Source: Monocercomonoides exilis PA203 (lineage: Eukaryota > Protista > Preaxostyla). Taken from it: 64,000 bases of DNA. Positions 1,642 to 45,972 of the stretch are shown piece after piece. How positions within the stretch are numbered: position 1 is the stretch's first letter; every line of letters starts with the position of its first letter. Below the pieces are notes generated by a model. That model searched no databases, had not been told where the DNA came from, and saw nothing but the letters and a program-made list of their open reading frames with translations. The stretch spans positions 1,736,001 through 1,800,000 of the forward strand of contig LSRY02000001.1 in NCBI GenBank assembly GCA_001643675.2, written 5' to 3'. Position numbers and translations under genes: made by a program.

Positions 1642-4600
1642 ATGATTCCTTTTGTTCTGGTTTTGCTTTTATTTTCACCTATTTGTGGAAAAGAAGAAAA
1701 TGATATCTTACGCACTGAATATGCTTCATTCGATGCTTCTGTCTCGATGAAACGTCAAGTTTCAACGAAGGGAAGCGTAATTCGGATGTTCTGCGAAATA
1801 CACAACTCGACAGCTGAATTGAAGGGGATATCACTTGAAACGCCAGAAGGTTGCTTGATGTTTGAAATAAGAGCAGGATCATTCTTAAAGGCAGAGGATT
1901 GCTTGCTGATGAAAAAAAGCAGTTTTGGCACACATTATATCTGCAATGAAGGAGCTTGCGAAATGGCAAACACTTCGCTGAGGATTGAAAAAGACAGTGA
2001 TTGCGGCTTGATGGAGGGTGTTGTGAAGTTGCTGTCAGAGGGGTCATCGCTGCTTGTGAAGAATAGCGAGTGGAAGAATGTTGCGTTTGGAGGGAGTGGA
2101 AGCATTTTGAGAAATGGAGAAGGAAGTTATGAAGGAATCAAAAACTGTGTGTTCACAAACATAACAGTGAAAAATGATAGAACAGATGAATTGCTGATCG
2201 AAAAAACTGGAAGGATGAGGAGAAGCGAATTGGAGGATTGCTTTGTTGAAAGATCGATGAATGTGCTGGAGGGAGAGATTGTGAGCGGAACACAGGGGTC
2301 TGTTTTCTTTTGGTGCAACAATTGCACATTCCTTCAAAACGAAAGAACTGATCGGAGAATGAGAAACACAGAAAGAAATTCTACAACTGAAACACAGAGC
2401 TTTATGAACGCTGAATGGAACGGATGTTCTGCTGAGTGTGGCGGAGCGCTCTATGTCCATGACAATCCTGATGCCACACTCACTGTTCTGAATTCATCTT
2501 TTGCGAAGTGCAATGCAACATCAACCAGAGGAGGTGGTATTTTTGCTTTGAATATTGCAGAATGCACCATAAAGCATTCAACATTTGTTGAGTGCTATTG
2601 CGCAGCATCTAATCACTATGGAGGAGGAGGAGCACAATTTCAAATAATAACAAATCAAATGCTTATCAACGACTGTCTATTTGCTGATGATTGGTCTGAA
2701 GATGATGGAGGTGGCTTGGCGATTGATTCAATTAAAACCACCAAATCAAAAGATTGTGTGCTGGATTCTTCATTTTATAACTGCAGCGGGCATGATACTA
2801 GAAGCACGGAGGGTGGTGCATTTCTAAATTGGGGCCCAGTTGATAAAGTTGTCACAAGAAATTGCCTTTTTCACCGTTGCAGCTCTGATTTTCGGGGTGG
2901 GGGTATTGGGATTAATGCATCGAATTATTACGGTGATCTTTTATGGTTTTGTTTTTTCCACGATAATACAGCTCCATATGCAAGTGATGTATATATATCA
3001 GATATATTATCAATTTCTCAACTTTCTTGGTGCTATTCAACTGGAGCAGACGAAAGCAGATGTTATGCAGGTGGGAACAAAGGCGAATGGCTTCCGAACA
3101 ATGGAGGGAAATGCAGGTTTGTTGGTCCAGCTCAAATTCAGACAAATGCAAAAGACACATTTAGCTGTGGGCTGAATGAATCTTGTGCGTGCCTCACAAT
3201 CAGCCATTGCATGTCCCAGTTGATTGTGGGGTTTGTGGAGGAAATGAAGGTGGTTGCTGGAACAGTTGTGGAAGAAAAAGGAGTAAATATTGGAGAGAAA
3301 ACGATCAGTGTGAAAGGGGCTTCCTCATCTGGCTCTGCCATTGAAACAAAATTCGGAGCAAATGAATTGAGTCTGTTTTATGTTGGAACAGGGGTGCTGA
3401 GCATGAGTGATCTGTCTGTGGTTCACAACACATCGCTTGAAAACAGCAGGCAATGCAGACTGTTTGAGATTGAAGGGGATGGAGGGATCAATTTGGAGAG
3501 ACTGAACATTTCGATGGATACTTCTCATTCAGAAGAGAGGAGGATTCAGAACTCGCTGGTGAAGATGGATGGAGGAGAGTTGAAGATGCAAGGTGTGAGA
3601 TGGGGTCGAACATTCGGCACCACAAATATGTTTTCTCTGCCTCAAGGATCGTCTGTTTCATTGTCTCTGGATGGCTGTGTGTTCAGCAACATTGTGAGAA
3701 CAACAGCAGGGCCATCGATGATGTGTGTGGGTGAAGGGTCACATTCGATAACTCTTGAAGGATGCACATTTGATGGTTGTGGAAGTGAGGAATCTGAATT
3801 TGGAGGGGGTTTGATGGCTGAAATAGGAAATGGTGGTTCATTAACAATGAATAGAGGTGTTGTTCAAAACTGCTATGCTTCGATCACTCAAGGGAGAGGA
3901 GGAGGAATTGGGCTGAAAGTGAAAGATACAAGTGCAGACTTTCTGATTTCATCAAGTTTTGAAGGAAACAGGGCCAAATGGGGAAGTGATATTTTTGCTG
4001 ACTCGATCGATCTGGAATTAACAGCAAAAAGTGGAAAGATAACATGTCTGACAGCTTCATTTGAAACAAGGAGCAAAATACAAGGATTTGACAAAGGGAA
4101 TGAATCAACACCAATTCCACTTTGTGCTTATCTGATTCCTTTGCCAGATGAGATTATTGTGAGCAATGCTGATGCATTTGACAACTTTTATTGCGGATAC
4201 GCTGAGATTCCATGCATGACCCTGAAGCATTCGCTGACAAGGCAAGAAGAAGAAAAGAAGATTGTTGTCAGTGGACTGATTGAAGTGAAAAATGAACTGA
4301 CGTTTGATTCCTTCAAGCACACAATCAGAGGGCAGGATGAAAACAGTGGATGGAAAGTGATTGATGAATGTGATGGAAGTGGAGAAAGCATGATAGCAGT
4401 CAGAACAAATGCTATTTTGAAATCACTCACTTTCTCTGTTCCTTCTATTCTTCCAAATCATGAAGCATTCTTCAGTTCTTCCTCACAATTATTTTCACTT
4501 GAAGATTGCTCACTGAGTTTTCAAAACTCCCAGTCAGTATTATCATATGTGTTTTTATCAGTGTCAGCGGGAAAGGTTTCTGTATCATCTTTTGTTGTAT

Positions 4601-7600
4601 TATCCTTGACAATTGGGAATTTTCCGTTGATTTGCCTTGATGGAAGCAACGTGGATGGCACTTTCGCTTCCATGAGCATTGAAGATATTTGCAGGGAGAC
4701 AAAGAGTGTTTTGTTTGGAGTGGTGAATGGAGCATCTTTAACGATTCAGGATTCAACACTTTCAGTGAAAGCATCCACACAAGCAGATTCATCATCAGCA
4801 GGATCAATTCGAGTGATTTCGACAAAAGGTGCGAAATTGATGAAGCTGACAAACAATACGATGAGCGGATTCAAGGGAATTGGAGAAAATGGAGGAGCAA
4901 TGGAATGCACACTTGAAAGTTATTGCACTCTGGAAATAGTAGGAGGGACGATGTCTGGGTGTGAGAGCAAGGGAGGGGATGGAGGAGGGTTGTGGGTTGA
5001 GATGGAAGAGGGGTCGGCATTCACTGTGGGAAACATGACAGAGGCAGACTCAGCAAAAACAACATCTTCAAATGTTGAAAGTGGTTTGTTGCAATTTGCG
5101 AGTTGCAAGGCAACACAAAGCGCAGATGGAAAGTGTGGACATGGGGGAGGGATTTATCTTCATTTGGCTGATGGAGCAAGCTCATTCACTTTGAAGGATG
5201 TTTCATTTTTTGGGTGTGATGCCAGAGAGGGGAAAGATATTTTTATTAACGCAGATGATCTTTCAGGTGTGATTGACAGAGAATCGATCAGTTTCGGAGC
5301 CGACTTGAATGAGCTAACAAAATTGAATGGATTTGAGAGATTGGGGCTGAACGAAGCATTTGCTATTCCGCTGGTCTTGTATTTGTGGAATAACTTTTCA
5401 GCTCCAGCGTTTGTGGGAGGATCATCAAGCCACGATTTTTCGATGTGTGGGTTTGAGACTTTTCCATGCTCAACAATCGCAAAGGCAGCATCAGTGCACT
5501 TTGAAGGGAAGAAAAAGGATGTTGCTCTTCTTGAGCCATTTGTCTTTGAGGAGGAATTGACCTTGACTGGAAATGAATGGAGTGTGAAAGGAAAAGAGAA
5601 TGAGATGAAATGCGATGTTTGTGATCGAATTCCAGGAACACAAAGTGGATTGATAGAGAATACGATTCCAACATCTGTGGCTGGTCTTGTGTTTTGTTTG
5701 ACGGAATCCCTGTCTTTTCATGAAAGTGTGTTTGAGTGCCATTCAGGGAAACTCACGCTGAACAAATGCGGGATGGAAGGAGGATCTGAAGGCATTTCGA
5801 CAGTGTTTGTGAAGGCTGTTGGAGGGGTTGTGGAAGTGATTGAGTTTTCAACAAAAAATTTGAAAATTGGAGATTCATCGTTTTTCATTGTTGAGGGAAG
5901 CGCTGAAAGTGTGCCTTCGATAAATATGACGAAGAGCGTTTTTGGAGAGATCTCTTTGGGAAATGGGTGTGTTGTTGAGTGTCGCAATGGAAATATCGAG
6001 AAGATAACAGGATGCACATTTTCATCGATTACTCGTTCGAAGGGAAGTGGAGGATGCATCAGCATTAGGAATGAAGATGATGGAAGCGATTATGAAGTTG
6101 AGATGTTGAACTGCAATTTCGAAGACTGTGCTGTTATTGGGGAGGAAGAAGAACGCGGAGGCGGAGGATTCTTTTATGAATCATCTGGAAATACGAATCT
6201 GCTGATGAGCAGGTGTGAGTTTTATTGTTGCACAGCGCCATATGAAGAGGAAATTGTTGGATATGGAGGAGGAATAATGATGAAAATGCTGAGAGATGAA
6301 GAGGCAGATTTTGTGATATCCTCTCCACTTTTTTCATCTGAAAAGCCAAACAATGCGAAGTTTGGGAAGGACTTGTTTATTTCATCTCCATCGCTTGTCA
6401 AGAGCATCAAGAACGAAACTCTGCCATTTGTGAAAGATCGATTGGATTTGGTGACAGAGGACTCGATGAGAGGGTTTGATGGAGGAAACAGAGAATGTGC
6501 AATCCCGCTGATCTATTTCTGGAGAAAGATTGGATCGAGTGTGCATATTGCAAGAGGAGGGAACAATGTGGTTGTGTGTGGGCTGTTGGAGTATCCATGT
6601 GCTTCTGTGGATTATGGGGTGAAGCGGGGAAGAAACTTGGGGGTGGAGTCGATTGCAGTTCAGGGGGTTTGCGATGTGAGGAGTGAAATGAGGATGAGTG
6701 GGATGAAGCTGGAAGGAGCGAATGGCGATCGGGACAGAATCGAATTTGTTCGAGCTGTTGAAGGGGAAGGTGATTGTGTTGTTGAATGCAAAGGGGTTGT
6801 TCAATTCGAAGAAGTGGGGATGGTGATTCCGACAGCCTTTGGCAATGGGGCAGGGACTCTCATGGAGACAGGCGCTGATGCAGTGAAAACGAGTGTTGTG
6901 AGTTGTGCAATCCATATGAAAGATGATGCTGAAGGAATGCTGTCATTTGTGCTGATCAGTGCCTCGAAAGGAATTGTTGAGATCGAAGAGACAAAGATAG
7001 CAGGTCTGGCATCGAGGCACGAGATTTTGAGGATATCAACTGGCTGTGTGGTGTCAATGAGCGAAACGATATTTGAGGATATTGCATTGAGCGGGATAAG
7101 TGCATTGACAATGAGTGAAAGTGAGATTTCTGGAAACGGAAATGGCAATGGAGAAGAGGAGTGGAATATTCTATTTGAGAAATGCACATTTGCGAATGTG
7201 AAGCAAAATGAGCTGAACAATCCCTCGCTCATTTGCTGCAATGCGAATGATGAAGTGAAGGTGAAAATGGAGAATTCGACAACTGATGGTTGTGGGTCTG
7301 AAAGCTCTCATGAAGGAGGAGGGGTGTTTTTCGTTCTCAATGAAAGGGGGAGATTGGAGATGAATCACACGAATGTGACAGACTGTTTCTGCTCGAACAC
7401 TGGGAGAGGCGGAGGATTGTTTTTAAAATCGCAAAGTGTCTCGCTGAAGGCATTGCCATTTGTGTTGTCAAACATCACATTCCGAAAAAACGTGGCATTG
7501 AAGGGGAGGGATGTGTTTGTGAAGTGCACAGATCTAGACTCACAGATAAGTGAATCACAATTTCTGATAAATTTTGGAGAGCCATTTGTGAAGGAGCTGG

Positions 7601-10600
7601 CGATATGGGGGTGCACCGCAGAGAATTATGGGGATGAAGAGGATCTGCTGGGGAGGGTGTTTGTGTTCAGGAGCGAATTCATATTTGTGTCATCGATTGT
7701 GGGGAACAGCAGCAACAGCAAGAATTGTGGGGAGATGAAGGGCATGTGCTCATCATTGGATGTTGGGGTGAGCCACATTATTCCTTCAGATTATTCGCAG
7801 TTGTATGTTTGGAATGAAACCAGATTAAGTGGCTCATGCTCTGCTCAGAAGGTGACGATCAAATCGATGGAAGGAAGCAGGAGCGCTGAGATAAAGGTGT
7901 GTGAAATTGAGGTGGCAGGTGAGGATGGGATAACAAGTTCAGAGTATGTTCGAGTTGAGAAAGTGTCATTTGTTTTTGGTGGAATGGAGAATGTTGTCTG
8001 TTCGAGCTTAATACACCAGCTGAACGGACATCTTATTCTCGAATCTGTTTCATTTCTGTCTGAAAGCAGAACCACAGAGAATTCACGAACATCATTTGAT
8101 TCTTCTTTATTGGTTGTTGAAGATGGGATATTTGAGGCAGAAAAGTGCATTGTTAGCTGTTTGGAATTCTCGAAGCCTGTGTTCCGAGTCTTGAGCTCAG
8201 AAAGAGCAACATTTGAGGATCTTACCATCGGGAATGCCAAGTTCACAAGCTCAGTGATTGAATGCGGCTCAAGTCAGAACATGAGTGTGCTGAGGCTGGA
8301 AGCAACAAGCATCACTCTTCAAGATAGGAGCCTGATTTCATTTGAAAACCACCAACCATCTCTGACTGTTTCATTTGTGCAATCGTTGTTTGCAAACATC
8401 AGCCGAACATCATGTGAATCTTGCATTATTTGTGGAGCTCGATCAATGGGATGTTTAGAGATGCACAATTGCTCTTTTCATGAATGCACATCGAGTTCGG
8501 TGAAGGGGAGCCAAGTGGGGATATCGTCGAATGAGAATGTGTTGATAGATTCGTGTGTGTTTGAGGGAAGCTTGCTTGTTGGTGTAAAAGAAATGAAGGG
8601 GATTTTCGATGAGATCTGCAAATGGAATGGTTCTGTTGTCGACTTGTCGAAGAGCGAAGCAGTTGTGAGAGACACAACGATATGCAACTCCTCAAAGGGA
8701 GGTTTGACTATGAGTGGAGGATCTTTGATGATTGAGAAAGGAGAATTATCAAACAACAATCCTTTCATTGAGAAATTTCCCTCTCTTCGCCGAAACATCA
8801 TTTGCTCAGATTCAGCGTCATTGACCATTTCCAGTTTAAAAGGAGGTGATGGGGCGTTGCCAAATACTTCAATTTGGATGCTGGATGATGGCTGCACAGT
8901 TGGAGGGATTATATCTGAGAGGGATTCACCGTTCTTCATCCCAGTATTGGAGAGCGTTGAAGCAAGGGAAGAAGGAGCAGAAGTGGATGTTGTGTTCAAA
9001 GGGAAGCTTCTTCTCCCGTGCAACTTGTCATTCATGGTTGTGAAGCAGATGGGAGATGAAAAACAGATAGAAAAATATGAGTTTGATGAGATTGGGCATG
9101 TGTCTGAGACAGAGGCAAATGGGAGATTGCGAAAGGAGACGATTAGGGAAGCAGAAGACGAGGCAGAGGTGAGAGTGTGCATTCTGTTTGGGGGCTCTGA
9201 TGATTTGTCATCCACTGATTCTTTCATTCTGAAGAACAAAAGTGAGACAAAATTGAAAGGAAATGAAAGGATTGCTGAAAATGGAAATGAGAAGAAGTCA
9301 TGGTGGGTTGTTGTTGTAATTTCATGCCTCATTTTCTTAATTTTACTTTCAATAATTGTTGTTTTGGCTGTTCGTTGGAGAAAAGCAAAGAATGAGAACA
9401 AAGATTTGAGAGAGATTGTGAATGACACAGTGAGGAAGGATCCGAAGCTGATTGAGATGGTGACAATGGAGATGTCTCCTGAGGAGCAATGGAGGAAGGC
9501 AGAGAGGGAGGCAGAGAAGAAGAATGAAGAGAGGATAAAGAAGAGAATATATGAGACGAATATGCAACATTCTGAATCATCAGAGCATCTTCTATCTGAG
9601 AGTGGCTCCACTGAATATATTTTGGGGAGAGATTCAGACAAGATCCCCGAATGGGTGCTGGAGAAAGTTGAGGAAGAAGATATAAGGAAGAGAACTCCAT
9701 CTCCATCCACTTCATCCACAGACACTTCAGACACAGAATCCTCTTTTGTTCGAAGGGAAGATCTGTGCCCAACAACTTCGTCAATGTCAAATTTGGTGGA
9801 TGCAATGGCCTGTTCATCTCCTCATGAGAAGCTGATTGTGGATTTGAGGGATTCGCTGTTCATGCTTCTTCATGGAAAGAACAAGACAAAAGAGATGCCG
9901 ATTGGCTCCTTGAAGGAGAGGGAGCAGACAGCTGCTCAAATCCTGTTCTGGGTGGCAAATCTTGCACTTCATTCATTTGACGAAATGGACAATCCTCTCT
10001 CATCTCTTGCCAATCTCAGTCCTCACATTGTGCTGTTCTCAGAACACATGGTGATCTGCATTGTGATGCACTCTGACTTCCTTTCTTCTGATGATGATTC
10101 AGATTCCTCATCGATCTCTTCATTAACTGTTGTCTCTTCTTCTTCCTCCAATATTTCAGTGATGAGCGAGAGATTCACAGACTCACCACCTCCTTCATCT
10201 GCCTTTGAGGAGGATGATGATATCAGAAAAGAGTGTCTGAGGTGGAAAGCACCAGAACTGCTGATGAACAAGAAGATGGGGGCAACAAAGGAATCAGTTG
10301 CCTTTTCAATTGGGATGATGCTGTGGGAATGCTTGACTTTGGAGATTCCGTTTGGGGAGTATGATGGAGATGGAGCAGGGCAGAAAATCAAAAATGGTGA
10401 AAGGCCGAATATGAAGCATGCAGAGGGAAGTGAACTCTGCGATGTGGCAAGAGGATGCTTGTCGAGCGAAGAGAGCGAGCGGCCTTTGCTTGTGGATTTG
10501 AAGAAAGTATTTGTGCAACATCTCCCGAAAGATGCGTTCATATTCACGATTGCAGATGCACTATTCACCGAGAACGCGAACAATGCGAGAAGCGGAGCAG

Positions 10601-10665
10601 AAAGTGAAACAGAAAGTGAAACAGAAGGCTGGACGACTGAGCCAGCAACCATTCGAGATCGATGA
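1642..10665 (+). CDS. Giant single-pass receptor-like protein (~3,007 aa): signal peptide, beta-helix (pectin-lyase/Pmp-like) repeat ectodomain, TM, coiled coil, C-terminal TK/TKL-like pseudokinase
   Basis: Intronless ORF 1606-10665; the likely start is ATG 1642 (MIPFVLVLLLFSPICG signal peptide). Recurrent FxxC/FxxN and GG(A/G)(I/L) motifs. Five modules begin with a VS..D...CG....PC-type motif (~3112, 4153, 5407, 6541, 7681). TM WWVVVVISCLIFLILLSIIVVLAV (9301-9372) followed by RWRK. Kinase C-lobe motifs LRWKAPE, FSIGMMLWECLTLEIPF and ERP are present; GxGxxG, VAIK, HRD and DFG are absent. Confidence 0.9.
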   Translation: MIPFVLVLLLFSPICGKEENDILRTEYASFDASVSMKRQVSTKGSVIRMFCEIHNSTAELKGISLETPEGCLMFEIRAGSFLKAEDCLLMKKSSFGTHYICNEGACEMANTSLRIEKDSDCGLMEGVVKLLSEGSSLLVKNSEWKNVAFGGSGSILRNGEGSYEGIKNCVFTNITVKNDRTDELLIEKTGRMRRSELEDCFVERSMNVLEGEIVSGTQGSVFFWCNNCTFLQNERTDRRMRNTERNSTTETQSFMNAEWNGCSAECGGALYVHDNPDATLTVLNSSFAKCNATSTRGGGIFALNIAECTIKHSTFVECYCAASNHYGGGGAQFQIITNQMLINDCLFADDWSEDDGGGLAIDSIKTTKSKDCVLDSSFYNCSGHDTRSTEGGAFLNWGPVDKVVTRNCLFHRCSSDFRGGGIGINASNYYGDLLWFCFFHDNTAPYASDVYISDILSISQLSWCYSTGADESRCYAGGNKGEWLPNNGGKCRFVGPAQIQTNAKDTFSCGLNESCACLTISHCMSQLIVGFVEEMKVVAGTVVEEKGVNIGEKTISVKGASSSGSAIETKFGANELSLFYVGTGVLSMSDLSVVHNTSLENSRQCRLFEIEGDGGINLERLNISMDTSHSEERRIQNSLVKMDGGELKMQGVRWGRTFGTTNMFSLPQGSSVSLSLDGCVFSNIVRTTAGPSMMCVGEGSHSITLEGCTFDGCGSEESEFGGGLMAEIGNGGSLTMNRGVVQNCYASITQGRGGGIGLKVKDTSADFLISSSFEGNRAKWGSDIFADSIDLELTAKSGKITCLTASFETRSKIQGFDKGNESTPIPLCAYLIPLPDEIIVSNADAFDNFYCGYAEIPCMTLKHSLTRQEEEKKIVVSGLIEVKNELTFDSFKHTIRGQDENSGWKVIDECDGSGESMIAVRTNAILKSLTFSVPSILPNHEAFFSSSSQLFSLEDCSLSFQNSQSVLSYVFLSVSAGKVSVSSFVVLSLTIGNFPLICLDGSNVDGTFASMSIEDICRETKSVLFGVVNGASLTIQDSTLSVKASTQADSSSAGSIRVISTKGAKLMKLTNNTMSGFKGIGENGGAMECTLESYCTLEIVGGTMSGCESKGGDGGGLWVEMEEGSAFTVGNMTEADSAKTTSSNVESGLLQFASCKATQSADGKCGHGGGIYLHLADGASSFTLKDVSFFGCDAREGKDIFINADDLSGVIDRESISFGADLNELTKLNGFERLGLNEAFAIPLVLYLWNNFSAPAFVGGSSSHDFSMCGFETFPCSTIAKAASVHFEGKKKDVALLEPFVFEEELTLTGNEWSVKGKENEMKCDVCDRIPGTQSGLIENTIPTSVAGLVFCLTESLSFHESVFECHSGKLTLNKCGMEGGSEGISTVFVKAVGGVVEVIEFSTKNLKIGDSSFFIVEGSAESVPSINMTKSVFGEISLGNGCVVECRNGNIEKITGCTFSSITRSKGSGGCISIRNEDDGSDYEVEMLNCNFEDCAVIGEEEERGGGGFFYESSGNTNLLMSRCEFYCCTAPYEEEIVGYGGGIMMKMLRDEEADFVISSPLFSSEKPNNAKFGKDLFISSPSLVKSIKNETLPFVKDRLDLVTEDSMRGFDGGNRECAIPLIYFWRKIGSSVHIARGGNNVVVCGLLEYPCASVDYGVKRGRNLGVESIAVQGVCDVRSEMRMSGMKLEGANGDRDRIEFVRAVEGEGDCVVECKGVVQFEEVGMVIPTAFGNGAGTLMETGADAVKTSVVSCAIHMKDDAEGMLSFVLISASKGIVEIEETKIAGLASRHEILRISTGCVVSMSETIFEDIALSGISALTMSESEISGNGNGNGEEEWNILFEKCTFANVKQNELNNPSLICCNANDEVKVKMENSTTDGCGSESSHEGGGVFFVLNERGRLEMNHTNVTDCFCSNTGRGGGLFLKSQSVSLKALPFVLSNITFRKNVALKGRDVFVKCTDLDSQISESQFLINFGEPFVKELAIWGCTAENYGDEEDLLGRVFVFRSEFIFVSSIVGNSSNSKNCGEMKGMCSSLDVGVSHIIPSDYSQLYVWNETRLSGSCSAQKVTIKSMEGSRSAEIKVCEIEVAGEDGITSSEYVRVEKVSFVFGGMENVVCSSLIHQLNGHLILESVSFLSESRTTENSRTSFDSSLLVVEDGIFEAEKCIVSCLEFSKPVFRVLSSERATFEDLTIGNAKFTSSVIECGSSQNMSVLRLEATSITLQDRSLISFENHQPSLTVSFVQSLFANISRTSCESCIICGARSMGCLEMHNCSFHECTSSSVKGSQVGISSNENVLIDSCVFEGSLLVGVKEMKGIFDEICKWNGSVVDLSKSEAVVRDTTICNSSKGGLTMSGGSLMIEKGELSNNNPFIEKFPSLRRNIICSDSASLTISSLKGGDGALPNTSIWMLDDGCTVGGIISERDSPFFIPVLESVEAREEGAEVDVVFKGKLLLPCNLSFMVVKQMGDEKQIEKYEFDEIGHVSETEANGRLRKETIREAEDEAEVRVCILFGGSDDLSSTDSFILKNKSETKLKGNERIAENGNEKKSWWVVVVISCLIFLILLSIIVVLAVRWRKAKNENKDLREIVNDTVRKDPKLIEMVTMEMSPEEQWRKAEREAEKKNEERIKKRIYETNMQHSESSEHLLSESGSTEYILGRDSDKIPEWVLEKVEEEDIRKRTPSPSTSSTDTSDTESSFVRREDLCPTTSSMSNLVDAMACSSPHEKLIVDLRDSLFMLLHGKNKTKEMPIGSLKEREQTAAQILFWVANLALHSFDEMDNPLSSLANLSPHIVLFSEHMVICIVMHSDFLSSDDDSDSSSISSLTVVSSSSSNISVMSERFTDSPPPSSAFEEDDDIRKECLRWKAPELLMNKKMGATKESVAFSIGMMLWECLTLEIPFGEYDGDGAGQKIKNGERPNMKHAEGSELCDVARGCLSSEESERPLLVDLKKVFVQHLPKDAFIFTIADALFTENANNARSGAESETESETEGWTTEPATIRDR

Positions 10666-11563
10666 AAAAGAAGAAGTTACAAGCTCTGAACCAACAAAGT
10701 GAAATGGTCGTTTTGATTGCCGAAAGCCCAAGCTGTGGTCTGTTAATAAATGGAGCATGCTACGTTGGTGTTGTTGGAACCAGTATTACACACACCTGTC
10801 AGCAACAAACTTTGCCTGCTTTGAACACCAAACGGAGAAAGAGATTGGATTGCTTAAAATGATTTGGGGATATGCGTGTTGTGTGGGGAAACGTTTTTAT
10901 TTGGCCTGATGAAATGGATTGTGGTGTTGCTCCTTTGATCCATACAATTGCAGAATGGCCACAAATTTTATTGATTCTCTTTTATTATTATTTTCAGAAG
11001 AAGAAGAAGAAGAAATAGCTCGGACAGATAAGTTTTTAACTGCTGTGTGCAGTTTCAAACGTATCAATAGCCATCATTTCATATGCTTCGAGATGTTTTT
11101 TCAATTTTAAAAAAAAATTCAAAAAGCATATTTCTTATTGATATTTTAAAATGCCTCATTTTCTCAAAATCGTTTAAAAAAATATGTCGATTGCCAATAA
11201 ATGTGTGATTATTTATTTGCAATTTTGGCCTTGAAATGGAACTTTTGAATTTGAAAATAAGTGAAACAAAAATCAAGATATTATTCTCCAAGTTTATTTT
11301 AATACAGTGAACGACAAAATCATTGAAGCTTTCAAATCGTTTAATGCAAGGTGAAAACAAGAAATGGTGAAATAAGCAGAAAACTTTATTTAAAGAAAAA
11401 TGTTATGAAAAAAATGAAAAATCGAGAAAGTTACAAAAAGAAATTTCTTTCATAATTTAGAACTCATTTGAAAAACCGTTTTTAAAAAACATTCATTCAT
11501 TATTTGAACATGTCGAAAATAAAAATTGAAAAAATTTTGTGAAATGGGACAGATTTCTTTCAT

Positions 11564-11775
11564 TTGGCTGATCCTTTTTGAAATCAGACTTTCGTTCGAG
11601 TTTTGATCAAAATTTTATTCTCAATGGGATTTTGAAAAAATGAACTAAAACAGTTCACACATACAGTACATGATGAAAATTTTCAAAAAAAATATAACTT
11701 TTCACTAAATTCCATTGAGATTAAAATTTTGATCAAAACTCGAACGAAAGAATGATTTCAAAAAGGATCAGCCAA
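11564..11775. mobile_element. MITE-like inverted-repeat element (~210 bp)
   Basis: Arm 11564-11632 (ttggctgatcctttttgaaatcagactttcgttcgagttttgatcaaaattttattctcaatgggattt) is the reverse complement of 11707-11775 with about 4 mismatches in 69 bp; ~74-bp AT-rich spacer; no ORF. Confidence 0.6.
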
Positions 11776-12237: not shown

Positions 12238-14785
12238 ATGACCTCAAGAATAAAACAATGCTTATCCTACATTTTGCATTATAGAACTCAACTGATTTTA
12301 TTTTTTGTTGTGTTATGTACTTCAACTCCTTATAATTTATTAACCCCGATGATGCCAAATTATCTTAGAGGTTCACTTGAATTTATTTCAACTAATTATA
12401 AAAATACATTATCATTTTAATAATTTGAATTTTTCAGAACTTGGAGGAAACACTGTTGATTATGGTCTAATTCTTGCTGCATATTCTCTTGCACAATTTT
12501 TTGGTTCGCTTGCGGTTGGAATTATCAGTGATTTTGTTGGAAGAAAGAAAACTCTTGTTGTTAGTTGTTTTGGAGTTGCTTTGTTTAATTCACTTTTATG
12601 CGTCGCCCCAAATATTACATCAATCATTGTATTTAGAGCTGCTACTGGACTTTTTGGAAGCGTTTCAACTGTTAGCATGGCAATGACATCAGATGTTATT
12701 CCTCCAGGGCCAGTCCGCACAACTTGGTTCGGTTGGTTCGGCTCGGCTGTATCACTTGGAGCTGTCATTGGACCTGCACTTGGTGGCTTGCTGGGCTCTT
12801 CATCAATTGCAGTTCCTTGTTTAACAGCTGGAGCTTTTAACTTTGTTGGAGGAGTACTTCTAATCATTTTTGTGCAGGAATCTCTCCCTCCAGAAAAAAG
12901 AAAGAAATTGCCATGCGCAAAGCGAACAGACGGAGATATTTCACACAAAAATACCAAAACAAAAACTCTCTCAGAATATAGAAAAACAAAACAGCAATCC
13001 ATATCACTCGAAGAGGAGTCAGCCAATGAATCTACAGCAGGAAATGAAACAACGGCACAAGATGCAAAGAAGCCTTCAGTTTCCAAGCAGCCTTCGGGTG
13101 AAAGGAATGATGCTTCCGGTGAGTCCATATGGAAGACCATACGCAACCCTTCTTTCCTTCTGACGTGTGTGAACTACTTTTTCGGGCAGTACACTGGAAC
13201 CACACTAACAGCACTTATTGGACCCTTGTGTTTGGACAGATATTTCTTCACGACGCAGATGGTTGGGTTCATCACAATGGTTAATGGGATCGGCATGCTT
13301 CTGACACAGCTGCTGGTATTTCCGATTGTTATTCCGAAAATCGGGGAGAGAATCCCGCTGATCGTAAGCACCATCTTCACGTCTGTTATCCTCGTTTTGA
13401 TGGGCGTCGTGCCCAACAACATAGCAGTTTGGTTTTTCTCCGCCTTGTTTGGAGTCGGCCAGGCGTTCAGTGTGCCTACGTCGACGTCGATTTTCTCGTA
13501 CTTTGGATCTCCGCAGACAAAAGGCACTGTGCTCGGGATTGGGCAGTGCATTGCAACTGCATCGCGAGCCGTGGCGCCGCTGATCTCCACAGCCATTTAC
13601 GAGTCGAACGACTCGGTGCCATTCTACATCTCAGCGTCGGCGTCGGCTCTTGCGTCGCTTCTGATGATCTGTGTGAAGTATTCGGTTGCTGGCAGCAAGG
13701 GAGAGGAGGATAAAACCGCCATTGAAGAAATGACAGCCAAGAAAGTGGCAGAGAAGAAAGCGCAACTGCGAAGGAGGATGGCAGCTATCCAGAAGAGCGA
13801 TGAAGAGATGCATCTTTCGTATCCTTCTGATGGTTGCAGAGTCATTCCGCGTGTATCGTCTGCTCCGCCGTTTGTGTACACGTGTGTGGATGAGATTGTT
13901 GCACTACATGCGCCTCACTTGGTTCGCACGTTTGGTGAGGACGAGGCGCAGAGGCAGAGAGCAACAGTGACTGAAGCACATGTGAACATGAAGGAAATGG
14001 GAGTTGGATGTGGAGTGGGTGATAAGATTGAGGTTGAGGTTGAGGTTGAGGTTGGGCTTGGGGCAGGAAGAGTGGCAGTGGAGATGAAAGAGGAGTCGAT
14101 GGAAAAGAAAGAAGGATTTTCTTCTTTGCAGGGAGCAAATTGTTATGATGATGATGATGATTATGACAATAGCATTGAAGGCGTCGATTCTGATTGTTAT
14201 AAAGAGCGTTCCAACTCTCCGATTGGATTGGATACAAATCAGGAAATTCCAATAGACACGCCCTTGTTTGACAAAGATTTTGAGAAATTGTCTGGCCATG
14301 AGGATGAGACAGTCACTCCGCCTGCACAGTTTCCAGAGGAAGTTATTGAACAAACGCAAAATAAGACTCAAATACAAACAAAAAATTTAAAGTTTAACAC
14401 GCCTTTTAATCAGACAGCAGCGTTCTTCAGACCTTCATCCAGATTGCCTTATCAGTCGCTGCTGTGCTTCCACCCTGTCAAAACCAAGTTAAATACCAAC
14501 AAGAATACATCTGCTTCATCTGTGAGTGAGCCATCTCTTTCTCCTTCTCATTCTTCTTCCCCTTCTTCTTCTCATTCTTCTTCCCCTTCTTCTCTTTCAG
14601 AAGAGTCAGAATGCCCTCCTTTTTACGATGTTCCACTGAAGACAGAGATGAAAACTGTGCTTTCTTCTCCAATTTTGGGCTGCTTCCTGTTAGCACACAA
14701 TCCATTGAGTTATATGTCGGAGCCTGATAATAACAATAGCAATAGCAGTAGCAAAGGAAATGAAATTGAAATTGAAATTGATAGC

Positions 14786-14827
<42 letters not shown>

Positions 14828-31557: not shown

Positions 31558-31603
31558 AAAAGATCAAGATAAAGATAAAGATAAAGATAAAGATAAAGAT
31601 AAA

Positions 31604-38220: not shown

Positions 38221-41200
38221 ATGAGGGTGCATTTGTTCTTTTTAGCATGTCTGATTCTGGCAGAGACATTTAAATATCAAGTCATCTATGAAACAGCCAC
38301 ATTAGTAAACCAAGGTATTTTTTCAAATATAACTTTTAAATATAAATGTATTTATTTTGGTCAAGGCAACTCAAATGATGCACAATTTCCCACAAATGAC
38401 AATTATAATTATTTGTCAGAACAGAGAAAAGCATCAGGAATGGAAAGATGGAAGGCAGGAACATGCACAGCGATTTATTCATTTTTACGCTTTTCCAATT
38501 CTTCAGTTGGACTGGAAAATGTGGCAGTCGAATATTCTTCCTCGCCATTTATTCTAATAACAGATAAATCGAATGTGATGTTGGATTCCTGCATTTCCTC
38601 CCAAAAATCGGAATCTCCGTTTCATTTGCAAAGTGGGACTATCTGCCTCACAAACATGACTTTGATCCACCAAATGAGTCTTAACCCTTCCAGTCTCATA
38701 TTTTCATCTGATGACAAAAATTCAGCCATTTTGAGCAACTCCATCATGACAGACCTGGCTGTTTCAGCTTCAGACCATTTCCTGTTATCAGGAAAGAGCA
38801 AAAGCGAACAGATTGATAATTGTGCCTTCAGGAACATGTCTGTGAAATATGCCTCGAATAGTGATCATTTTGTGGAACATTCATGCTTTCGAAGTTCAAT
38901 GGAGAACAGCCTCATTTATTCGTGTGTGAATGTCTTTGAAGGAGGGATTTCGAGTGGATCGTATTCTTCACAGGAATTCATCTGCAAAAACACAACAATA
39001 AACTTTGGGAAAAGAGAAATGATTGCCCTTCAGAAAAAAGAAAAACTGATCACGACAGAAAGCCAGTCATTTTCGTTGTGTGAATGGGAAGATTGCACAT
39101 CCCCGTATGGAGGCGCTCTTTATGTTCATGACAATGCAAGTGCCATTCTCACAGTCGAGAATTCTTCATTCACAAGATGCGAAGCAACTTCTACAAGAGG
39201 CGGAGGAATATATGCACAAAGAATTGCTGAATGCATTGTGCTTCATTCAACATTTGATCAATGTGTTGCATATGGTCCTTCAGATTATGGAGGAGGGGGG
39301 ATTCAATTTGAAAATGTATATGTTCAACCGATGGTTGATGATTGTTATTTTAATAATTGTTCTGCTGCCAATGATGGAGGGGGAATAAGCATTTTAAATG
39401 AAACTACTCAAAAACAAAAAAAATGTGTGATAAACTCGTTTTTTAAATTTTGTCAAGCATCTAACTCAACAGATTCTATTGGAGGTGCAATTATTCATTG
39501 GGACTGCACTGATCAAGTGGTTGTATCAAATTGCCTATTTTACTGTTGCCATTCAGTATGTGGAGGAGGTGCAGTTGGAATAATGATTAATGCATATAAT
39601 AAGGGAGTTTTATTTTATTTCTGTTTTTTCCATAATAACACATGCATGAAAGGAGGACATGATATTATTCTGCAAAACTCAACGTCAAATAATATTGATC
39701 CAAGTTGCTATTCGACAAGACAAACATCAAACAGAGTCAGTACAAATTGGAATCTAATTACAGACAGAAGCGAATGGCTACGCAAAGATTTTGGAAATGT
39801 GAGATTTGTATCTTCAACTGATTCGCAACCAAAAGGCATAGACACATATGTATGTGGAATTAATGAATCTCATCCATGCAGCACTGTCAGCCATTGTTTG
39901 TCTCAGCTTATTCCAGACTTGGTTCCCAATGTCGAGGTATCTTCGGGAACGATTATCGAAACAAATAGTTTTGATTGTGGGATCAACACTTTCACTGTTT
40001 ATGGCCAAAGCAATATGAGCACAGCAATCCAAACAGAATTTGAAGTATCTGGGTTATCTCTTTTTTCAGTCTCAACAGGCACATTGACTGCCAGAGACTT
40101 TGTTCTTGTGCATGACTCGGCTCATCCGAATAACCGTGGGTCTAGACTGTTTGAGATAAGTGGAGCAGGAGGAATGAGGATCAGCCGACTGAACATATCT
40201 TTTGGGAGCGGACAATCAACAGAAACAGCATTTTCGACAGAACTGATAAATGTTCAGAATGGGATGTTGCAGATGGAACATGTGAACTGGGCAAAGACTA
40301 TTTCCAGAAATTCACTGTTTTCGCCTTCTTCTACAAATGAGATTTCATTGACACTTTCAGAATGTACCTTTGATGGGATTGAGAGAGCAACAAGCGGAGC
40401 AGCAGTGATGTCTTTTTCGAATGACAAGGCCAACATTGATGTGAATTCTTGCATATTTTCTGGTTGTGGAAGCAGAACATCAGCTGATGGGGGATCGATG
40501 ATGCTGTGTGTTGGGAATGGAAATGAAGTGAAAGTGAAAGGTGGATCTTTTGATGGGTGCTTTTGCTCTGCAACATATGGATTTGGGGGAGGAATTCTTC
40601 TTCGATTATTGAATGAAAATCCAGATTTCCTGATCTCCTCTTCGTTTGGCACAAATACAGCCAAATGGGGAAGCGACATCTTCGTCATTTCACCCAATCT
40701 GGAAGAAACAACAAAATCAGAAAACATCACATGTGTGACAGATTCATTGGATTCTCTTGAGAAGGTGAGAGGATATGACGATGGAAACAACAGTGTGGCC
40801 ATTCCTCTGTGCATCTATCTCCTCCCCACCCCAGAAGAAATATATGTGAGTAATACTGAGGCATCTGATCACTCACATTGTGGAATTGTCCAATTCCCAT
40901 GTTTGACTTTGAAGCACTCACTCGCACGGTTGACAGGAGAAAAGAAAGTTGTTGTGAATGGAATGATTGCGATGAGTGATGAATTAACATTTGTTGGACA
41001 GAAACATGAAATCCGAGGAAATGATGATGAAAGTGGTTGGACAGTCTCTGATTCAAGTGAGACATCCAATTCATCCATGATTTCAGCCAGTGTTGAAACA
41101 GAATTATCAAAACTCATCTTCTCTCTTCCATCTTCCCTTTCTCTTCACTCCACTTTCATTTCGTCATCTTCATCATCAATGACTCTGTCTCAATGTTCGC

Positions 41201-44200
41201 TTTCTCTTCAAAATCCATCATCAGAATTGACATTTCTGTTCTTGTCTGTTGAGTCAGGGATCCTGATAATCGACAAATTCTCAGCTTCATCAATTGATTT
41301 GAGGAGAAATCCATTGATCTCATTGTCTGGAAGTGGAACAAATAGCGAGTTAATGAGCACTCTGTGGTTGAACATGACAAACTGCAATTTCACAAAAATC
41401 GAAAGAGCAGCTGGAAGTGGAGGGTGTGTGAGCATTGACAACAGCAATGATGAAAATACAAATTCACAAATAAATATTGAAGAATGTTCATTCGATGGAT
41501 GCTCTGTGCTTGCTGATGAAAGCAGAGGAGGGGCCATCAATGTGCAGTTAAAAGGGAATACGCATTTAGATATTATTTCTTGCACATTCACAGGATGCAC
41601 AGCACCAGCTGAAGGACGAAAGATTGGGTTTGGAGGAGGGATTGCACTGAAGCTGATTGATGATGATGCTTCATTTGTGATCTCATCCCCTGTTTTTGAG
41701 GCAGACAAGCCAAATATTGCAAATAATGGAAATGATCTGTTTGTCGAATCATCGAATCTGACAAAGAGCGTTACAAACACCTCTCTTCCATTTGTGACTG
41801 GGCATCTGGCAGATATTTCGTTTGATTCAATGAGAGGCTTTGATGGGAGTGACACAACGAATGCCATTCCACTGGTCAATTTCTGGCGAGCAATTGGATC
41901 AGAGATATTTATTGGGAGCGAAGGTTGTGATGTGTGTGTGTGTGGATTCTCAGATTATCCTTGTCTGTCAATTGATTATTCATTGGATCGATTGCCAGAA
42001 GGAAATGAAAGGAATGTCAGCATCATTGGAAAAGGGTATCTTCAAAAATGTGATGATGTGAGTGGAATTTCAATAAAATCAGCTGATGAAGAAATGTGTT
42101 CTTTGGAGTGTCTCTCATCTCTTGAAGGAGCAGAAGGAGCAGCAATGAAGATTTGTCGCATCACCAATTTCGAGCTGATCAAGTTTGTGATTCCATCTTC
42201 ATTTGCAAGTGGAGTGAATGTTTTGATGCATGTTGGATCAAGCGAAGGATTGTTGACTGTGAAAGACTGCTCATTCACCAAAAAAGGAGATGAGAGAGAA
42301 GACACTATCAACTTTGGGCTGATCAAAGCAGAAGGAGGGACAGTTGTGCTGGAATTGGTGACGATGCAATTGTTGAGCTTTTCTCAGGATGTTATTTCTG
42401 TGTTGTCAACAACGGTGCTGAATGCGAAAAATCTGACGATGAAGAATATTGAGTTGGATAGAGCAAGTGGATTGAGGATATCAAAGGGATCAGCCGGAGA
42501 GAAGAGAGGGAGCAATGAAGGAGAACAAAACATTGTTATTGAGTGGAGTTTGTTTGAAGAAGTCACCCAGAACAAGACAGAAAACATTCCCGTCATTCGA
42601 AATGACAATGATGAGCCATTGAAAATGGGAGTTCGGAACACGACGATGAAGAGATGTGGTGGAACGAGGTGTGGAAAGGGAGGAGGGATGTTTTGTGTGT
42701 TGAATGAGGGAGGAAGTTTTGAGTGCTCATTTTGCACGATTTCAGAGTGTTTCTGCTCGACTGCAGGAAGAGGTGGGTGGTTGTTTCTGGAATGCACCTC
42801 GATAGCTGAGCAGCCTCTGAATTTTGTTCTGTCGAACATCACATTCAGAGACAACAACGCATTGAGAGGGAGAGATGTGTATGTTCGATGCCACTCAATC
42901 GAAACACAAATTGTTGATGAGCAATTCTTGCTGGATTTCAGAGCGCCATTTGTGAAGGATCTTGCAATATGGGGATGCACAACAGACTCGTTTGAAGGAG
43001 AAGAAGATCTTTTGTTGAGGGTTGTGAAATATCAGAGCGAGACGATATTTGTGTCATCAATTGCAGACAATCGCGCAGACAGCAAGCAATGTGGAGAATT
43101 GGACACGCCATGCCACTCATTGAGTTTTGGAATTCAGCATATCATTCCATCTCTGTACTCGCAGCTGCTGATCTTGGGGCAAACAGAAATTGTTGGGAAG
43201 TGTGATGTTCTTGATGTGACCATCCGCTCACTTCAATCTCCCTCAGCTGCTTTGGTGCATCTGAATTCAACAATAACCAATGAGGGAAATCTGATCACAA
43301 CCTCAGAAAAAGTACGGATCGAAAGTGTGAAATTCAATTTTGGTCAGTTATTTTCATATTCAGGCAATTCAATCATTCATGAAGCAAAGGGTCAACTTTC
43401 TCTTTCATTTGTTGATTTTTCTTTGGTTGGCGAATCAGAAAGCATTGAATCTGTTGTTCTGAATTCAACATTGTTGAGCATCGAAAATGGAATTCTTCAT
43501 GTTGACAACTGTTCAATATCAATGCTTTCATTCAAGAAGCCTTCATTTTTGTTAAATGGAGATGAGGTTTCAATCACAAATATGAAACTGGAACAAATTG
43601 AATCAACAACAGATGTATTTGAGATTGGACAATGTGAAAGTGTTGCATTGAATGGAGTATCTGCAGATGGAGTGAAATTGTCTGAGGGTTGCGTTATTGC
43701 GTTAAACGATTTGTCATCAGGAACAGTTTCTATTGGAATCTCCTCATTCAACAACTGTTCGAGAAATTCAGAAGGAGCTTCTGTTCTTTCAGCTTCTTCA
43801 TCATCTGCTCAAATCGTTCTTTCAAACTGTTCCTATTCAAATTGCGATTCTCTATCTGAAAAAGGAAGCATTATGGAGATGAACAATGCAAAGGATGCTT
43901 CGATGGATTTATGTCAATTTATTGGAGTGAAAACAAAAGAAAGTATAAATAAGAGAAACAGCGATTTTGAAGAAATATGTAAGTGGAATGGATCGCTTGT
44001 TCACTCAGCGAATTCTTCATTGATGATGAAGTATGTGACAATAATGAATGCTTCATCAGGTGGATTGTCAGTGTCTGCAGGCGATGTGACGATTGAGAAA
44101 GGGGAGTTTTTGAACAACAATCCATTCATTGAAAAATATCCATCAGTGAGAAGAAACATCATTTGTTCAGATTCAGCATCGCTGTCCATTTCCAGCTTGA

Positions 44201-45972
44201 AAGGGGGAGATGGACAAGAGAAGAATTCTTCTCTTTGGATGTTGAACGATGGATGTGATTTGAGAGGGATAGCAGGAGAAAGGTCATCTCCATTTTTCAT
44301 TCCCAAACTGGAAGATGTTTCAGTGAATGAAAATGGCAGCAATGTTGTTGTGAAATTCAGGGGATCTCTTTTTGTGCCATGTGATTTGTCATTCAGGTTG
44401 ATATTCAAAACAGGGGATGTGGAGTTGGTTGAGACATATCCATTTGAGGAAGACAGTTTTGTATCAGAAACAGAAGTGATTGGAAGAGTTCCATCAGAAA
44501 AAATTTCAAATATTGGAGATGAAACAGAGGTGTCAGTGATGATTCTGTTTGGAAAACAATTGGCTGCAACTTCTCCTCAGATTCTGAAGAACAAAACAGA
44601 ACCAAAGACTGGAAATGAAAAAATGGTTGAAGGAAGAAAAGAAGGGAAATCTTATTGGTTGTTGATTGTGATAATAATGGCAGTTATTCTTTTGATTGTT
44701 CTGATTGTTTCTGTTATTCTTGCAGTTCGATGGAGGAAATCTGAGAGACGAACAGAAGAATTGGAAGAAATAGTGAATGATACAGTGAAGAAGGATCCAA
44801 AAGCATTCGAGATGGTGACGATGGAGATGTCTCCAGAGGAGCAATGGAGGAAGGCAGAGAGGGAAGCAGAGAAGAAGAATGAAGAGAGGATAAAGAAGAG
44901 GGTGTATGACAAGACACTGGAACATTCAGAGTCATCAGAGCATTTGCTGAGTGAGAGTGGTTCCACTGAATACATCCTGGGAAGAGATTCAGACAAGATC
45001 CCTGATTGGGCATTAGAAAAGGAAGAGGAGGAAGAGGTGAGAAAGAGATCGCCTTCACCTTCTATCTCATCCACTTCAACAACTGATTCAAATTCAACAT
45101 TTGTTCGAGGGGAGGATCTGTGTCCAACCACTTCATCGATGTCGAATCTGGTGGATGCGATGGCCTGTTCATCTCCCCATGAGAAGCTGATTGTGGATCT
45201 GAGGGATTCACTGTTCATGCTGTTGCATGGAAGGAACAAGACAAAAGAGATGGCGATTGGCACTCTGCAGGAGAGGGAGGTGACAGCTGCACAGATCCTG
45301 TTCTGGGTGGCGAATCTGGCACTCCACTCCTTTGATGAAATGGACAATCCTCTCTCATCTCTTGCCAATCTCAGTCCACACGTTGTGCTGTTCTCTGAGC
45401 ACATGGTGATCTGTATTGTGATGCATTCGAACTTCCTTTCTTCTGACGATTCAGATTCCTCATCGATCTCTTCATTAACTGTTGTCTCTTCTTCTTCCTC
45501 CAATATTTCAGTGATGAGCGAGAGATTCACAGACTCTCCACCTCCATCATCTGCCTTTGAGGATGAGGAACTTTTCAAAAAAGAGTGCCTGAGGTGGAAA
45601 GCACCAGAATTGTTGATCAACAAGAATATGGGAGCGAAAAAGAAGTCAGTTTCATTCTCGATTGGGATGATGCTATGGGAGTGCCTGACATTGGAGATTC
45701 CATTTGGAGAATATGAGGGTGAGGTGGCAGGGCAGAAGATCGTGAATGGGGAGAGGCCAGACATGTCAGAAATCGAAGGCACGACATTCTGTCGCCTGGT
45801 GAGATCGGCAGTGGCGCAGAGCAAAGACGATCGCCCGTCGCTGTTTGTGATGAAGCGCGAGTTTTTCCAACACTTTCCGGCTGGAGTGATGATGGTGACT
45901 GTGTCAGATGCAATCGATTACACCGAAGACTCAAAAGTTGTGAGTGCCTCGTTCATCTCGGACATGCAGTGA
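38221..45972 (+). CDS. Second giant receptor-like beta-helix/TM/pseudokinase paralog (2,583 aa)
   Basis: Signal peptide MRVHLFFLACLILA; four CG..PC modules (~39802, 40840, 41905, 43045); TM YWLLIVIIMAVILLIVLIVSVILAV (~44653-44727); cytoplasmic part nearly identical to that of 1642-10665. Confidence 0.9.
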   Translation: MRVHLFFLACLILAETFKYQVIYETATLVNQGIFSNITFKYKCIYFGQGNSNDAQFPTNDNYNYLSEQRKASGMERWKAGTCTAIYSFLRFSNSSVGLENVAVEYSSSPFILITDKSNVMLDSCISSQKSESPFHLQSGTICLTNMTLIHQMSLNPSSLIFSSDDKNSAILSNSIMTDLAVSASDHFLLSGKSKSEQIDNCAFRNMSVKYASNSDHFVEHSCFRSSMENSLIYSCVNVFEGGISSGSYSSQEFICKNTTINFGKREMIALQKKEKLITTESQSFSLCEWEDCTSPYGGALYVHDNASAILTVENSSFTRCEATSTRGGGIYAQRIAECIVLHSTFDQCVAYGPSDYGGGGIQFENVYVQPMVDDCYFNNCSAANDGGGISILNETTQKQKKCVINSFFKFCQASNSTDSIGGAIIHWDCTDQVVVSNCLFYCCHSVCGGGAVGIMINAYNKGVLFYFCFFHNNTCMKGGHDIILQNSTSNNIDPSCYSTRQTSNRVSTNWNLITDRSEWLRKDFGNVRFVSSTDSQPKGIDTYVCGINESHPCSTVSHCLSQLIPDLVPNVEVSSGTIIETNSFDCGINTFTVYGQSNMSTAIQTEFEVSGLSLFSVSTGTLTARDFVLVHDSAHPNNRGSRLFEISGAGGMRISRLNISFGSGQSTETAFSTELINVQNGMLQMEHVNWAKTISRNSLFSPSSTNEISLTLSECTFDGIERATSGAAVMSFSNDKANIDVNSCIFSGCGSRTSADGGSMMLCVGNGNEVKVKGGSFDGCFCSATYGFGGGILLRLLNENPDFLISSSFGTNTAKWGSDIFVISPNLEETTKSENITCVTDSLDSLEKVRGYDDGNNSVAIPLCIYLLPTPEEIYVSNTEASDHSHCGIVQFPCLTLKHSLARLTGEKKVVVNGMIAMSDELTFVGQKHEIRGNDDESGWTVSDSSETSNSSMISASVETELSKLIFSLPSSLSLHSTFISSSSSSMTLSQCSLSLQNPSSELTFLFLSVESGILIIDKFSASSIDLRRNPLISLSGSGTNSELMSTLWLNMTNCNFTKIERAAGSGGCVSIDNSNDENTNSQINIEECSFDGCSVLADESRGGAINVQLKGNTHLDIISCTFTGCTAPAEGRKIGFGGGIALKLIDDDASFVISSPVFEADKPNIANNGNDLFVESSNLTKSVTNTSLPFVTGHLADISFDSMRGFDGSDTTNAIPLVNFWRAIGSEIFIGSEGCDVCVCGFSDYPCLSIDYSLDRLPEGNERNVSIIGKGYLQKCDDVSGISIKSADEEMCSLECLSSLEGAEGAAMKICRITNFELIKFVIPSSFASGVNVLMHVGSSEGLLTVKDCSFTKKGDEREDTINFGLIKAEGGTVVLELVTMQLLSFSQDVISVLSTTVLNAKNLTMKNIELDRASGLRISKGSAGEKRGSNEGEQNIVIEWSLFEEVTQNKTENIPVIRNDNDEPLKMGVRNTTMKRCGGTRCGKGGGMFCVLNEGGSFECSFCTISECFCSTAGRGGWLFLECTSIAEQPLNFVLSNITFRDNNALRGRDVYVRCHSIETQIVDEQFLLDFRAPFVKDLAIWGCTTDSFEGEEDLLLRVVKYQSETIFVSSIADNRADSKQCGELDTPCHSLSFGIQHIIPSLYSQLLILGQTEIVGKCDVLDVTIRSLQSPSAALVHLNSTITNEGNLITTSEKVRIESVKFNFGQLFSYSGNSIIHEAKGQLSLSFVDFSLVGESESIESVVLNSTLLSIENGILHVDNCSISMLSFKKPSFLLNGDEVSITNMKLEQIESTTDVFEIGQCESVALNGVSADGVKLSEGCVIALNDLSSGTVSIGISSFNNCSRNSEGASVLSASSSSAQIVLSNCSYSNCDSLSEKGSIMEMNNAKDASMDLCQFIGVKTKESINKRNSDFEEICKWNGSLVHSANSSLMMKYVTIMNASSGGLSVSAGDVTIEKGEFLNNNPFIEKYPSVRRNIICSDSASLSISSLKGGDGQEKNSSLWMLNDGCDLRGIAGERSSPFFIPKLEDVSVNENGSNVVVKFRGSLFVPCDLSFRLIFKTGDVELVETYPFEEDSFVSETEVIGRVPSEKISNIGDETEVSVMILFGKQLAATSPQILKNKTEPKTGNEKMVEGRKEGKSYWLLIVIIMAVILLIVLIVSVILAVRWRKSERRTEELEEIVNDTVKKDPKAFEMVTMEMSPEEQWRKAEREAEKKNEERIKKRVYDKTLEHSESSEHLLSESGSTEYILGRDSDKIPDWALEKEEEEEVRKRSPSPSISSTSTTDSNSTFVRGEDLCPTTSSMSNLVDAMACSSPHEKLIVDLRDSLFMLLHGRNKTKEMAIGTLQEREVTAAQILFWVANLALHSFDEMDNPLSSLANLSPHVVLFSEHMVICIVMHSNFLSSDDSDSSSISSLTVVSSSSSNISVMSERFTDSPPPSSAFEDEELFKKECLRWKAPELLINKNMGAKKKSVSFSIGMMLWECLTLEIPFGEYEGEVAGQKIVNGERPDMSEIEGTTFCRLVRSAVAQSKDDRPSLFVMKREFFQHFPAGVMMVTVSDAIDYTEDSKVVSASFISDMQ

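Follow-up and report, generated by a model that had tools for sequence, protein, structure and literature searches.

The window, i.e. the whole stretch of 64,000 nucleotides of Monocercomonoides exilis DNA analyzed here, contains two genes, A and B, whose reading frames had been proposed in a preliminary description and prove to be real: both are stop-free and intronless, and each encodes a hydrophobic signal-like N-terminus and one transmembrane helix. The features to which we refer are the following:

1642-10665, plus strand: gene A, intronless ORF of 3007 aa for a beta-helix receptor-like protein with a half-kinase tail, identical to database protein P0017
1642-1692, plus strand: signal-like N-terminus of A, as judged from the sequence
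1693-8934, plus strand: ectodomain of A with six beta-helix modules, modules 5-6 being folded by a model and modules 1-4 proposed from motifs and a weak Pfam match
8935-9246, plus strand: membrane-proximal beta-strand 'stalk' domain of A, swapped among paralogs independently of module 6
9307-9363, plus strand: predicted transmembrane helix of A, aa 2556-2574
9409-10401, plus strand: tail core of A, aa 2590-2920, comprising most of the pseudokinase along with charged helices and an S/T-acidic linker; zone of family-wide conversion
9787-10536, plus strand: TKL-type pseudokinase remnant of A, comprising the C-lobe, the hinge and the last two strands of the N-lobe; LAN stands at the HRD position, and both DFG and the P-loop are absent
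10096-10184, plus strand: 89-nt run of A with an exact counterpart in B; it lies in the Ser-rich activation segment, which is predicted to be disordered
10402-11500, plus strand: C-terminal end and 3' flank of A, type-specific, common to its sister L002 (92% over 880 nt) and to the chimeric L003, not to B
38221-45972, plus strand: gene B, intronless ORF of 2583 aa with five beta-helix modules
44662-44718, plus strand: predicted transmembrane helix of B, aa 2148-2166
44764-45753, plus strand: tail core of B, pieced together from segments of 20-80 nt whose best matches lie in many paralogs
45448-45536, plus strand: B copy of the 89-nt run, an exact match to 10096-10184

An alternative genetic code for A and B was rejected, tables 1 and 6 giving the same reading with TGA at the end of both genes. 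The public model of B (MONOS_5031, 2215 aa) lacks two parts of the open frame in the region 38221-39700, aa 1-266 with the signal peptide and aa 366-495; many paralogs in the databases also fall short of their ORFs. Pfam identifies as neighbors an MFS transporter (12377-15352), an exon of a conventional protein kinase (26152-27036), a cyclin-like ORF (27865-28746) and a DEAD-box helicase with a GUCT domain (47220-49808). No Pfam match was returned for the long minus-strand ORFs at 20136-25391 (1751 aa) and 55638-57938 (766 aa), nor for two plus-strand ORFs of 335 and 630 aa at 15854-18757, which share one frame, are separated by a single TAA/TAG stop (16859-16861) and could reflect an intron, a pseudogene or an error. 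At 11564-11775, 0.9 kb 3' of A, two inverted arms of 77 nt (91%) enclose a spacer of 58 nt; a sequence of about 215 nt resembling this repeat (76-81%) follows the paralogs L007 and L015, and the repeat is possibly a small MITE-like element. The 730-nt near-palindrome at 31534-32267 has inner arms of 203 nt (82%) around a 14-nt spacer, and AT-rich outer arms.

The module boundaries of A lie near aa 20, 492, 834, 1252, 1629, 2012 and 2432, and a CG..PC cap opens modules 2-6. The AlphaFold (AF2) model of aa 1630-2545, corresponding to modules 5-6, has a pLDDT of 87 and is almost entirely beta, its coiled parallel strands being those of a right-handed parallel beta-helix. The top Foldseek matches to this model are all right-handed beta-helix proteins (PL6 alginate lyases, glucanases/glycosidases, phage tailspikes), and since their TM-scores are low (~0.2) they indicate the fold alone. 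Pfam barely detects the ectodomain (Beta_helix, E 0.01-0.04); this weak match, together with the motifs, suggests that modules 1-4 of A are beta-helical as well. Membership of the Pmp family was considered and rejected, strict GGA[ILV] motifs being too few (1 in A, 4 in B) and the Pmp Pfam domain giving no match in either protein. DNA contig depth within the ectodomain of A peaks at 5397-5593, 5988-6184, 7564-7760 and 8943-9139, and these peaks mark conserved islands that many paralogs share exactly and at which modules may be exchanged.

The model of the tail of A contains a kinase C-lobe, predicted with confidence, as well as two strands, charged helices and an S/T-acidic linker that is disordered. 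Its structural matches are kinases (Z 15-18.6 overall; CTR1 18.6, ILK 17.9, TAK1 17.5), and in sequence the tail matches TNNI3K, TAK1, RAF and ILK, with E 1e-14 to TNNI3K and TAK1, so that fold and sequence agree on a TKL-derived C-lobe. Only the last two strands of the N-lobe are present in the model, and most structural matches start there. Alignment to TNNI3K places LAN at the HRD position of A; of 159 paralogs, most have LAN, LSN or LSS there, and no HRD, DFG or GxGxxG P-loop was found in any of these 159 tails. An active TK/TKL kinase was rejected, as the complete N-lobe, the P-loop, HRD and DFG are all missing; given the loss of the catalytic motifs, the tail would be a half-kinase unable to act as an enzyme. 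The activation-segment position is taken by a Ser loop of 42-53 aa that is predicted to be disordered. Of the preliminary description, the beta-helix ectodomain, the pseudokinase tail and the gut-protist source are supported.

Comparing A and B, their first ~250 aa, said to barely align, do so weakly (25% identity) yet with a score of 113 versus -39 +/- 13 for shuffles, and hence are still homologous; matching ectodomain modules are, as described, diverged (35-43% identical). That the cytoplasmic region is almost the same in DNA was an overstatement: the tail core has 84% nucleotide identity and a dS of 0.65 (versus 2.6 in the ectodomain end), 27% of its synonymous-capable codons differ, BLASTN gives 76% over 1.7 kb, and the DNA of the last ~55 aa is only 46% identical. 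The tail of A reaches 81-89% identity with other paralogs, B being ninth among the non-self matches. The 89-nt identity itself is exact and exceeds the chance length for this pair (permutation p=0.005, uncorrected), and the best match to this stretch of A in the whole genome is B. It could be thought that the 89 nucleotides are a constrained cis element, either an RNA structure or a protein site, which would explain silent identity in a low-complexity loop. This is extremely improbable, since across the family the Ser loop is not invariant but has the same median silent difference as the remaining tail (0.37), its length varies (42-53 aa), and the A-like allele occurs mainly on contigs 1 and 49. 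A homogenization specific to A and B was likewise rejected, tail exchange being a family-wide patchwork.

Tail DNA searches of the genome (82.3 Mb, 101 contigs) yielded 1,045-1,060 first-look candidates, which include fragments, so that ~1,000 copies is an estimate of the size of this family, the largest of M. exilis. The named top homologs are MONOS proteins. The M. exilis literature counts 332 'tyrosine kinases', of which 320 belong to TKL (PMC6759080), and reports a kinase expansion overlapping 'unclassified repeats' (PMC8767320). The A/B family is almost certainly this published 'protein tyrosine kinase'/TKL expansion (Pfam PF07714; PMC6759080, PMC8767320). Whereas it was published as 332 kinases, we find about 1,050 tail candidates that are dead, lack most of the N-lobe, carry beta-helix ectodomains and undergo conversion. 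None of the papers and passages that we searched describes the family as pseudokinases, with beta-helix ectodomains or with conversion; evolution driven by conversion is a known mode for gene families, but unpublished for this one. The same architecture occurs in at least 52 genes of Blattamonas nauphoetae. HRD was not found in 46 Blattamonas tails, and these tails are divergent (median 32% identity), while those of M. exilis form one tight species-specific group. The architecture therefore does not require a locked tail pool, which among the data seen is particular to M. exilis. A 1792-aa intronless homolog of the same architecture with a short loop (L031, Logan SRR13490893) is perhaps from another oxymonad.

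The evolution of the tails was analyzed at the DNA level in 28 loci chosen by likeness to the tail of A, using the last 480 ectodomain codons, the transmembrane segment, the tail and the 3' flank. In the 12 closest pairs the silent difference is 0.04-0.15 in the ectodomain end versus 0.19-0.39 in the tail core (Fisher p 7e-4 to 1e-18). The sister genes A and L002, for instance, differ by 0.04 in the ectodomain, by 0.19 in the tail and at 0 of 48 sites in the C-terminus, and their 3' flanks are 92% identical. Tail distance plateaus near 0.34 regardless of ectodomain distance (rho -0.08), while the distances of ectodomain and C-terminus correlate across the tail (rho 0.35). The same picture emerges from 111 proteins, in which tail identity (median 84%) is uncorrelated with that of any ectodomain module (24-44%); the ectodomain is mosaic too, stalks and C-terminal ends being paired with unrelated modules. 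Within the tail, the PHI test is significant (p<0.0005), and the distances of the first and second halves are uncorrelated (0.12), those of odd and even codons agreeing (0.65). Improbably long identical runs (p<0.01) occur in 30 of 378 pairs, A-B among them, where about 4 are expected. At four-fold sites the difference is 0.43 in the tail against a saturation of 0.645, compared with 0.57 against 0.61 in the ectodomain. AU tests (IQ-TREE), run with few replicates and accompanied by a warning, reject the cross-segment trees among those listed. Shared polymorphisms can also come from recurrent mutation, and the conversion tests are to be read with this caveat. No fixed break points were found, tract starts being spread over the whole tail. 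Regional silent homogenization, mosaic tracts, linked flanks and incongruent trees, the marks of concerted evolution, are thus all observed. Uniform dS with congruent trees for ectodomain and tail, the outcome which the preliminary description had set against its own proposal, did not occur, dS being uneven and the trees incongruent.

Single genes illustrate the exchange. L003 (C49:604315) is chimeric, with an ectodomain end 91-92% like L005 and L008, and a C-terminus and 3' flank 91% like A; L008 and L021, 40 kb apart on contig 49, share an identical tract of 507 nt and a tail core 97% identical next to unrelated ectodomain ends. GC at four-fold sites is 0.43 in the tail versus 0.35, but as it is also high in the unconverted C-terminus (0.42), we do not count it as evidence of conversion.

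Tail likeness depends on chromosomal position. For non-sister tails located less than 100 kb apart, less than 500 kb apart, farther apart on one contig, or on other contigs, the silent distance is 0.24, 0.27, 0.32 and 0.35, respectively, and identical runs of at least 60 nt are found in 44%, 29%, 9% and 2% of the non-sister pairs. Leaving out A gives the same trend (rho 0.64), as does leaving out contig 1 (0.57) or taking contig 1 by itself (0.69); the ectodomain has no positive trend with chromosomal distance. Eight of the 12 best matches to the tail of A are on contig 1, compared with 2 of the best 12 for a contig 8 tail and 3 for a contig 33 tail; of 86 matches to the N-terminus of A, by contrast, all but A itself and its sister lie on other contigs. 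In genome-wide DNA searches the same-contig enrichment is only moderate in size. Identical tail tracts elsewhere measure 102, 114, 180 and 507 nt. Given that tails become less alike the farther apart they lie, the 89-nt run is an ordinary local conversion tract of recent origin between neighbors 37 kb apart, either direct or via a third copy. Tails of contig 49 share alleles with those of contig 1 about as often as same-contig neighbors do, which may mean that both contigs are parts of one chromosome. Several family pairs 3-22 kb apart on opposite strands have identical or equal-scoring tails: L023/L024 (C10:1444150-1448276), L025 and C8:644333, C5:1012010/1034379, and C38:642912/653058.

Such patterns could in principle arise if short-read polishing had mixed the tails of paralogs. 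The assembly went through ten rounds of Pilon (PMC8767320), and tail words are common to very many copies. We nevertheless hold this artefact to be very improbable indeed, for contigs from two DNA runs (of one sample, probably the assembled one), taken at 98% likeness, contain no majority difference in the tail of A. Their summed depth climbs from ~100 to 4,000-10,000 over 9337-10321, which is massive word sharing outside the assembly and not copy number. The annotated protein of B is identical in EukProt, which appears to hold older gene models, and in NCBI; polishing is, moreover, blind to chromosomal distances of 100-500 kb, and most ORFs remain open. A collapse of the tails in the assembly, raised in the preliminary description, is likewise unlikely: tails differ from each other, A's shows no majority differences, and the distance effect acts at 100-500 kb.

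The tail has a dN/dS of 0.06-0.12. For the ectodomain, sister pairs give 0.25-0.38 over its last 480 aa, this part being under moderate purifying selection; averaged over these 480 aa, dN/dS gave no sign of positive selection. It is purifying selection, and not conversion, that keeps the tail protein constant. Of the earlier proposal that gene conversion holds the tail constant while the sensors diversify, conversion in the tail stands, but its role in keeping the tail constant does not, sister tails diverging more than the ectodomains. Could selection, combined with a recent burst of duplication, account for everything without conversion, protein constraint and biased codon use explaining the likeness? 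The low dN/dS of the tail (~0.1) and the tight species-specific group of M. exilis tails would agree with this. Such a process, however, cannot give sisters up to 5 times more silent divergence in the tail than in both flanks, and it yields neither PHI significance nor a decay with distance specific to the tail, so that we find it very unlikely.

The reading that we prefer, and consider probable as a whole, is that of a dead-tail beta-helix family whose tail pool is recombined by homology-driven conversion and whose members would be receptors or adhesins. Strong purifying selection on the tail leaves all copies with ~1 kb of 80-85% identical DNA; the homology thus results from selection on the protein and then permits conversion. 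Ectopic conversion by short tracts (tens to a few hundred nucleotides) trades tail variants, more often between chromosomal neighbors. The tails make up a single recombining pool that is linked neither to the ectodomain before it nor to the C-terminal end and 3' flank behind it, and because conversion mixes this pool of ~1,000 tails, recent sisters differ more in the tail than in the ectodomain. Exchange within the tail, or within islands of conserved ectodomain sequence, also yields chimeric genes. Conversion would here be ordinary homology-driven repair and not a programmed process. The proteins are type-I membrane proteins and probably act at the cell surface as receptors or adhesins, with beta-helices that recognize a variety of ligands; polysaccharides on the surface of bacteria, either prey or gut flora, seem the best candidates, with about an even chance of being right. 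The tail may serve as a scaffold, its S/T-rich loop and linker being phosphorylated by other kinases, and would thereby lead all receptors into one pathway.

A selected or programmed diversification comparable to VSG or var genes, with targeted conversion, one receptor expressed per cell and a repertoire that evades or tracks partners, appears quite unlikely. In its favor, the repertoire is very large, and chimeric genes such as L003 exist. In contigs from two metatranscriptome runs, the tail pool and the ectodomains of some paralogs are covered, but little of the ectodomain of A; as these contigs carry neither level nor strand, they provide just a hint of uneven expression. Against a programmed process, conversion tracks homology and distance, sister tails diverge instead of staying constant, and dN/dS in the last 480 aa of the ectodomain is that of purifying selection; the genes are dispersed over many contigs with mostly intact ORFs, and in Blattamonas this architecture goes with tails that are divergent. 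No expression site, recombinase, fixed recombination boundary or programmed switching was seen at the gene ends examined. A more ambitious version, in which the ~1,000 receptors form a clonally varied repertoire for gut bacteria, a subset per cell, with an interchangeable pseudokinase scaffold and with exchange favored for reshuffling ectodomains and C-terminal ends, is a speculation that we judge unlikely.

The largest family of a model amitochondriate eukaryote is redefined as ~1,000 giant receptor-like half-kinase proteins instead of some 330 tyrosine kinases. The tail pool becomes a natural read-out of ectopic recombination, whose decay along contigs could gauge the range of homology search and conversion, which is of interest in a protist with no described sex. 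Tail alleles may also help to join contigs into chromosomes, and the contrast with Blattamonas allows tests of why the tails became locked together in one lineage.

Among known systems, the clustered protocadherins come closest in their mode of evolution: according to PMC1852091 (citing Noonan 2004), conversion among nearby paralogs homogenizes their membrane-proximal part, the N-terminal specificity domains remaining divergent. Both families thus combine divergent outer domains with a membrane-proximal part regionally converted among neighbors. In that same source, however, the converted protocadherin regions are >99% identical and lie in small tandem subclusters, whereas the A/B family comprises ~1,000 dispersed genes with ~16-20% nucleotide differences, short tracts and decay with distance, and the folds are unrelated. 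The transmembrane kinases of another gut protist, Entamoeba histolytica, form an expanded ectodomain-TM-kinase family with near-identical, selectively expressed subfamilies (PMC2880585). They resemble the A/B family in layout, but the latter is not a member. EhTMKB1-9 is an active kinase, and EhTMK ectodomains are Cys-rich and not beta-helical. The Pmp adhesins of chlamydiae and trichomonads are right-handed beta-helices with GG-(A/G)-hydrophobic and FxxN/FxxC repeats (PMC11166332, PMC6701047). A and B share this fold and these repeats, but have few strict GGA[ILV] motifs, no autotransporter barrel and a pseudokinase tail. The tail, finally, has the TKL C-lobe fold of the pseudokinase scaffolds ILK, KSR and MLKL. 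These scaffolds retain a full N-lobe, whereas in A and B two N-lobe strands are left and an S/T-rich loop of 42-53 aa stands in the place of the activation segment.
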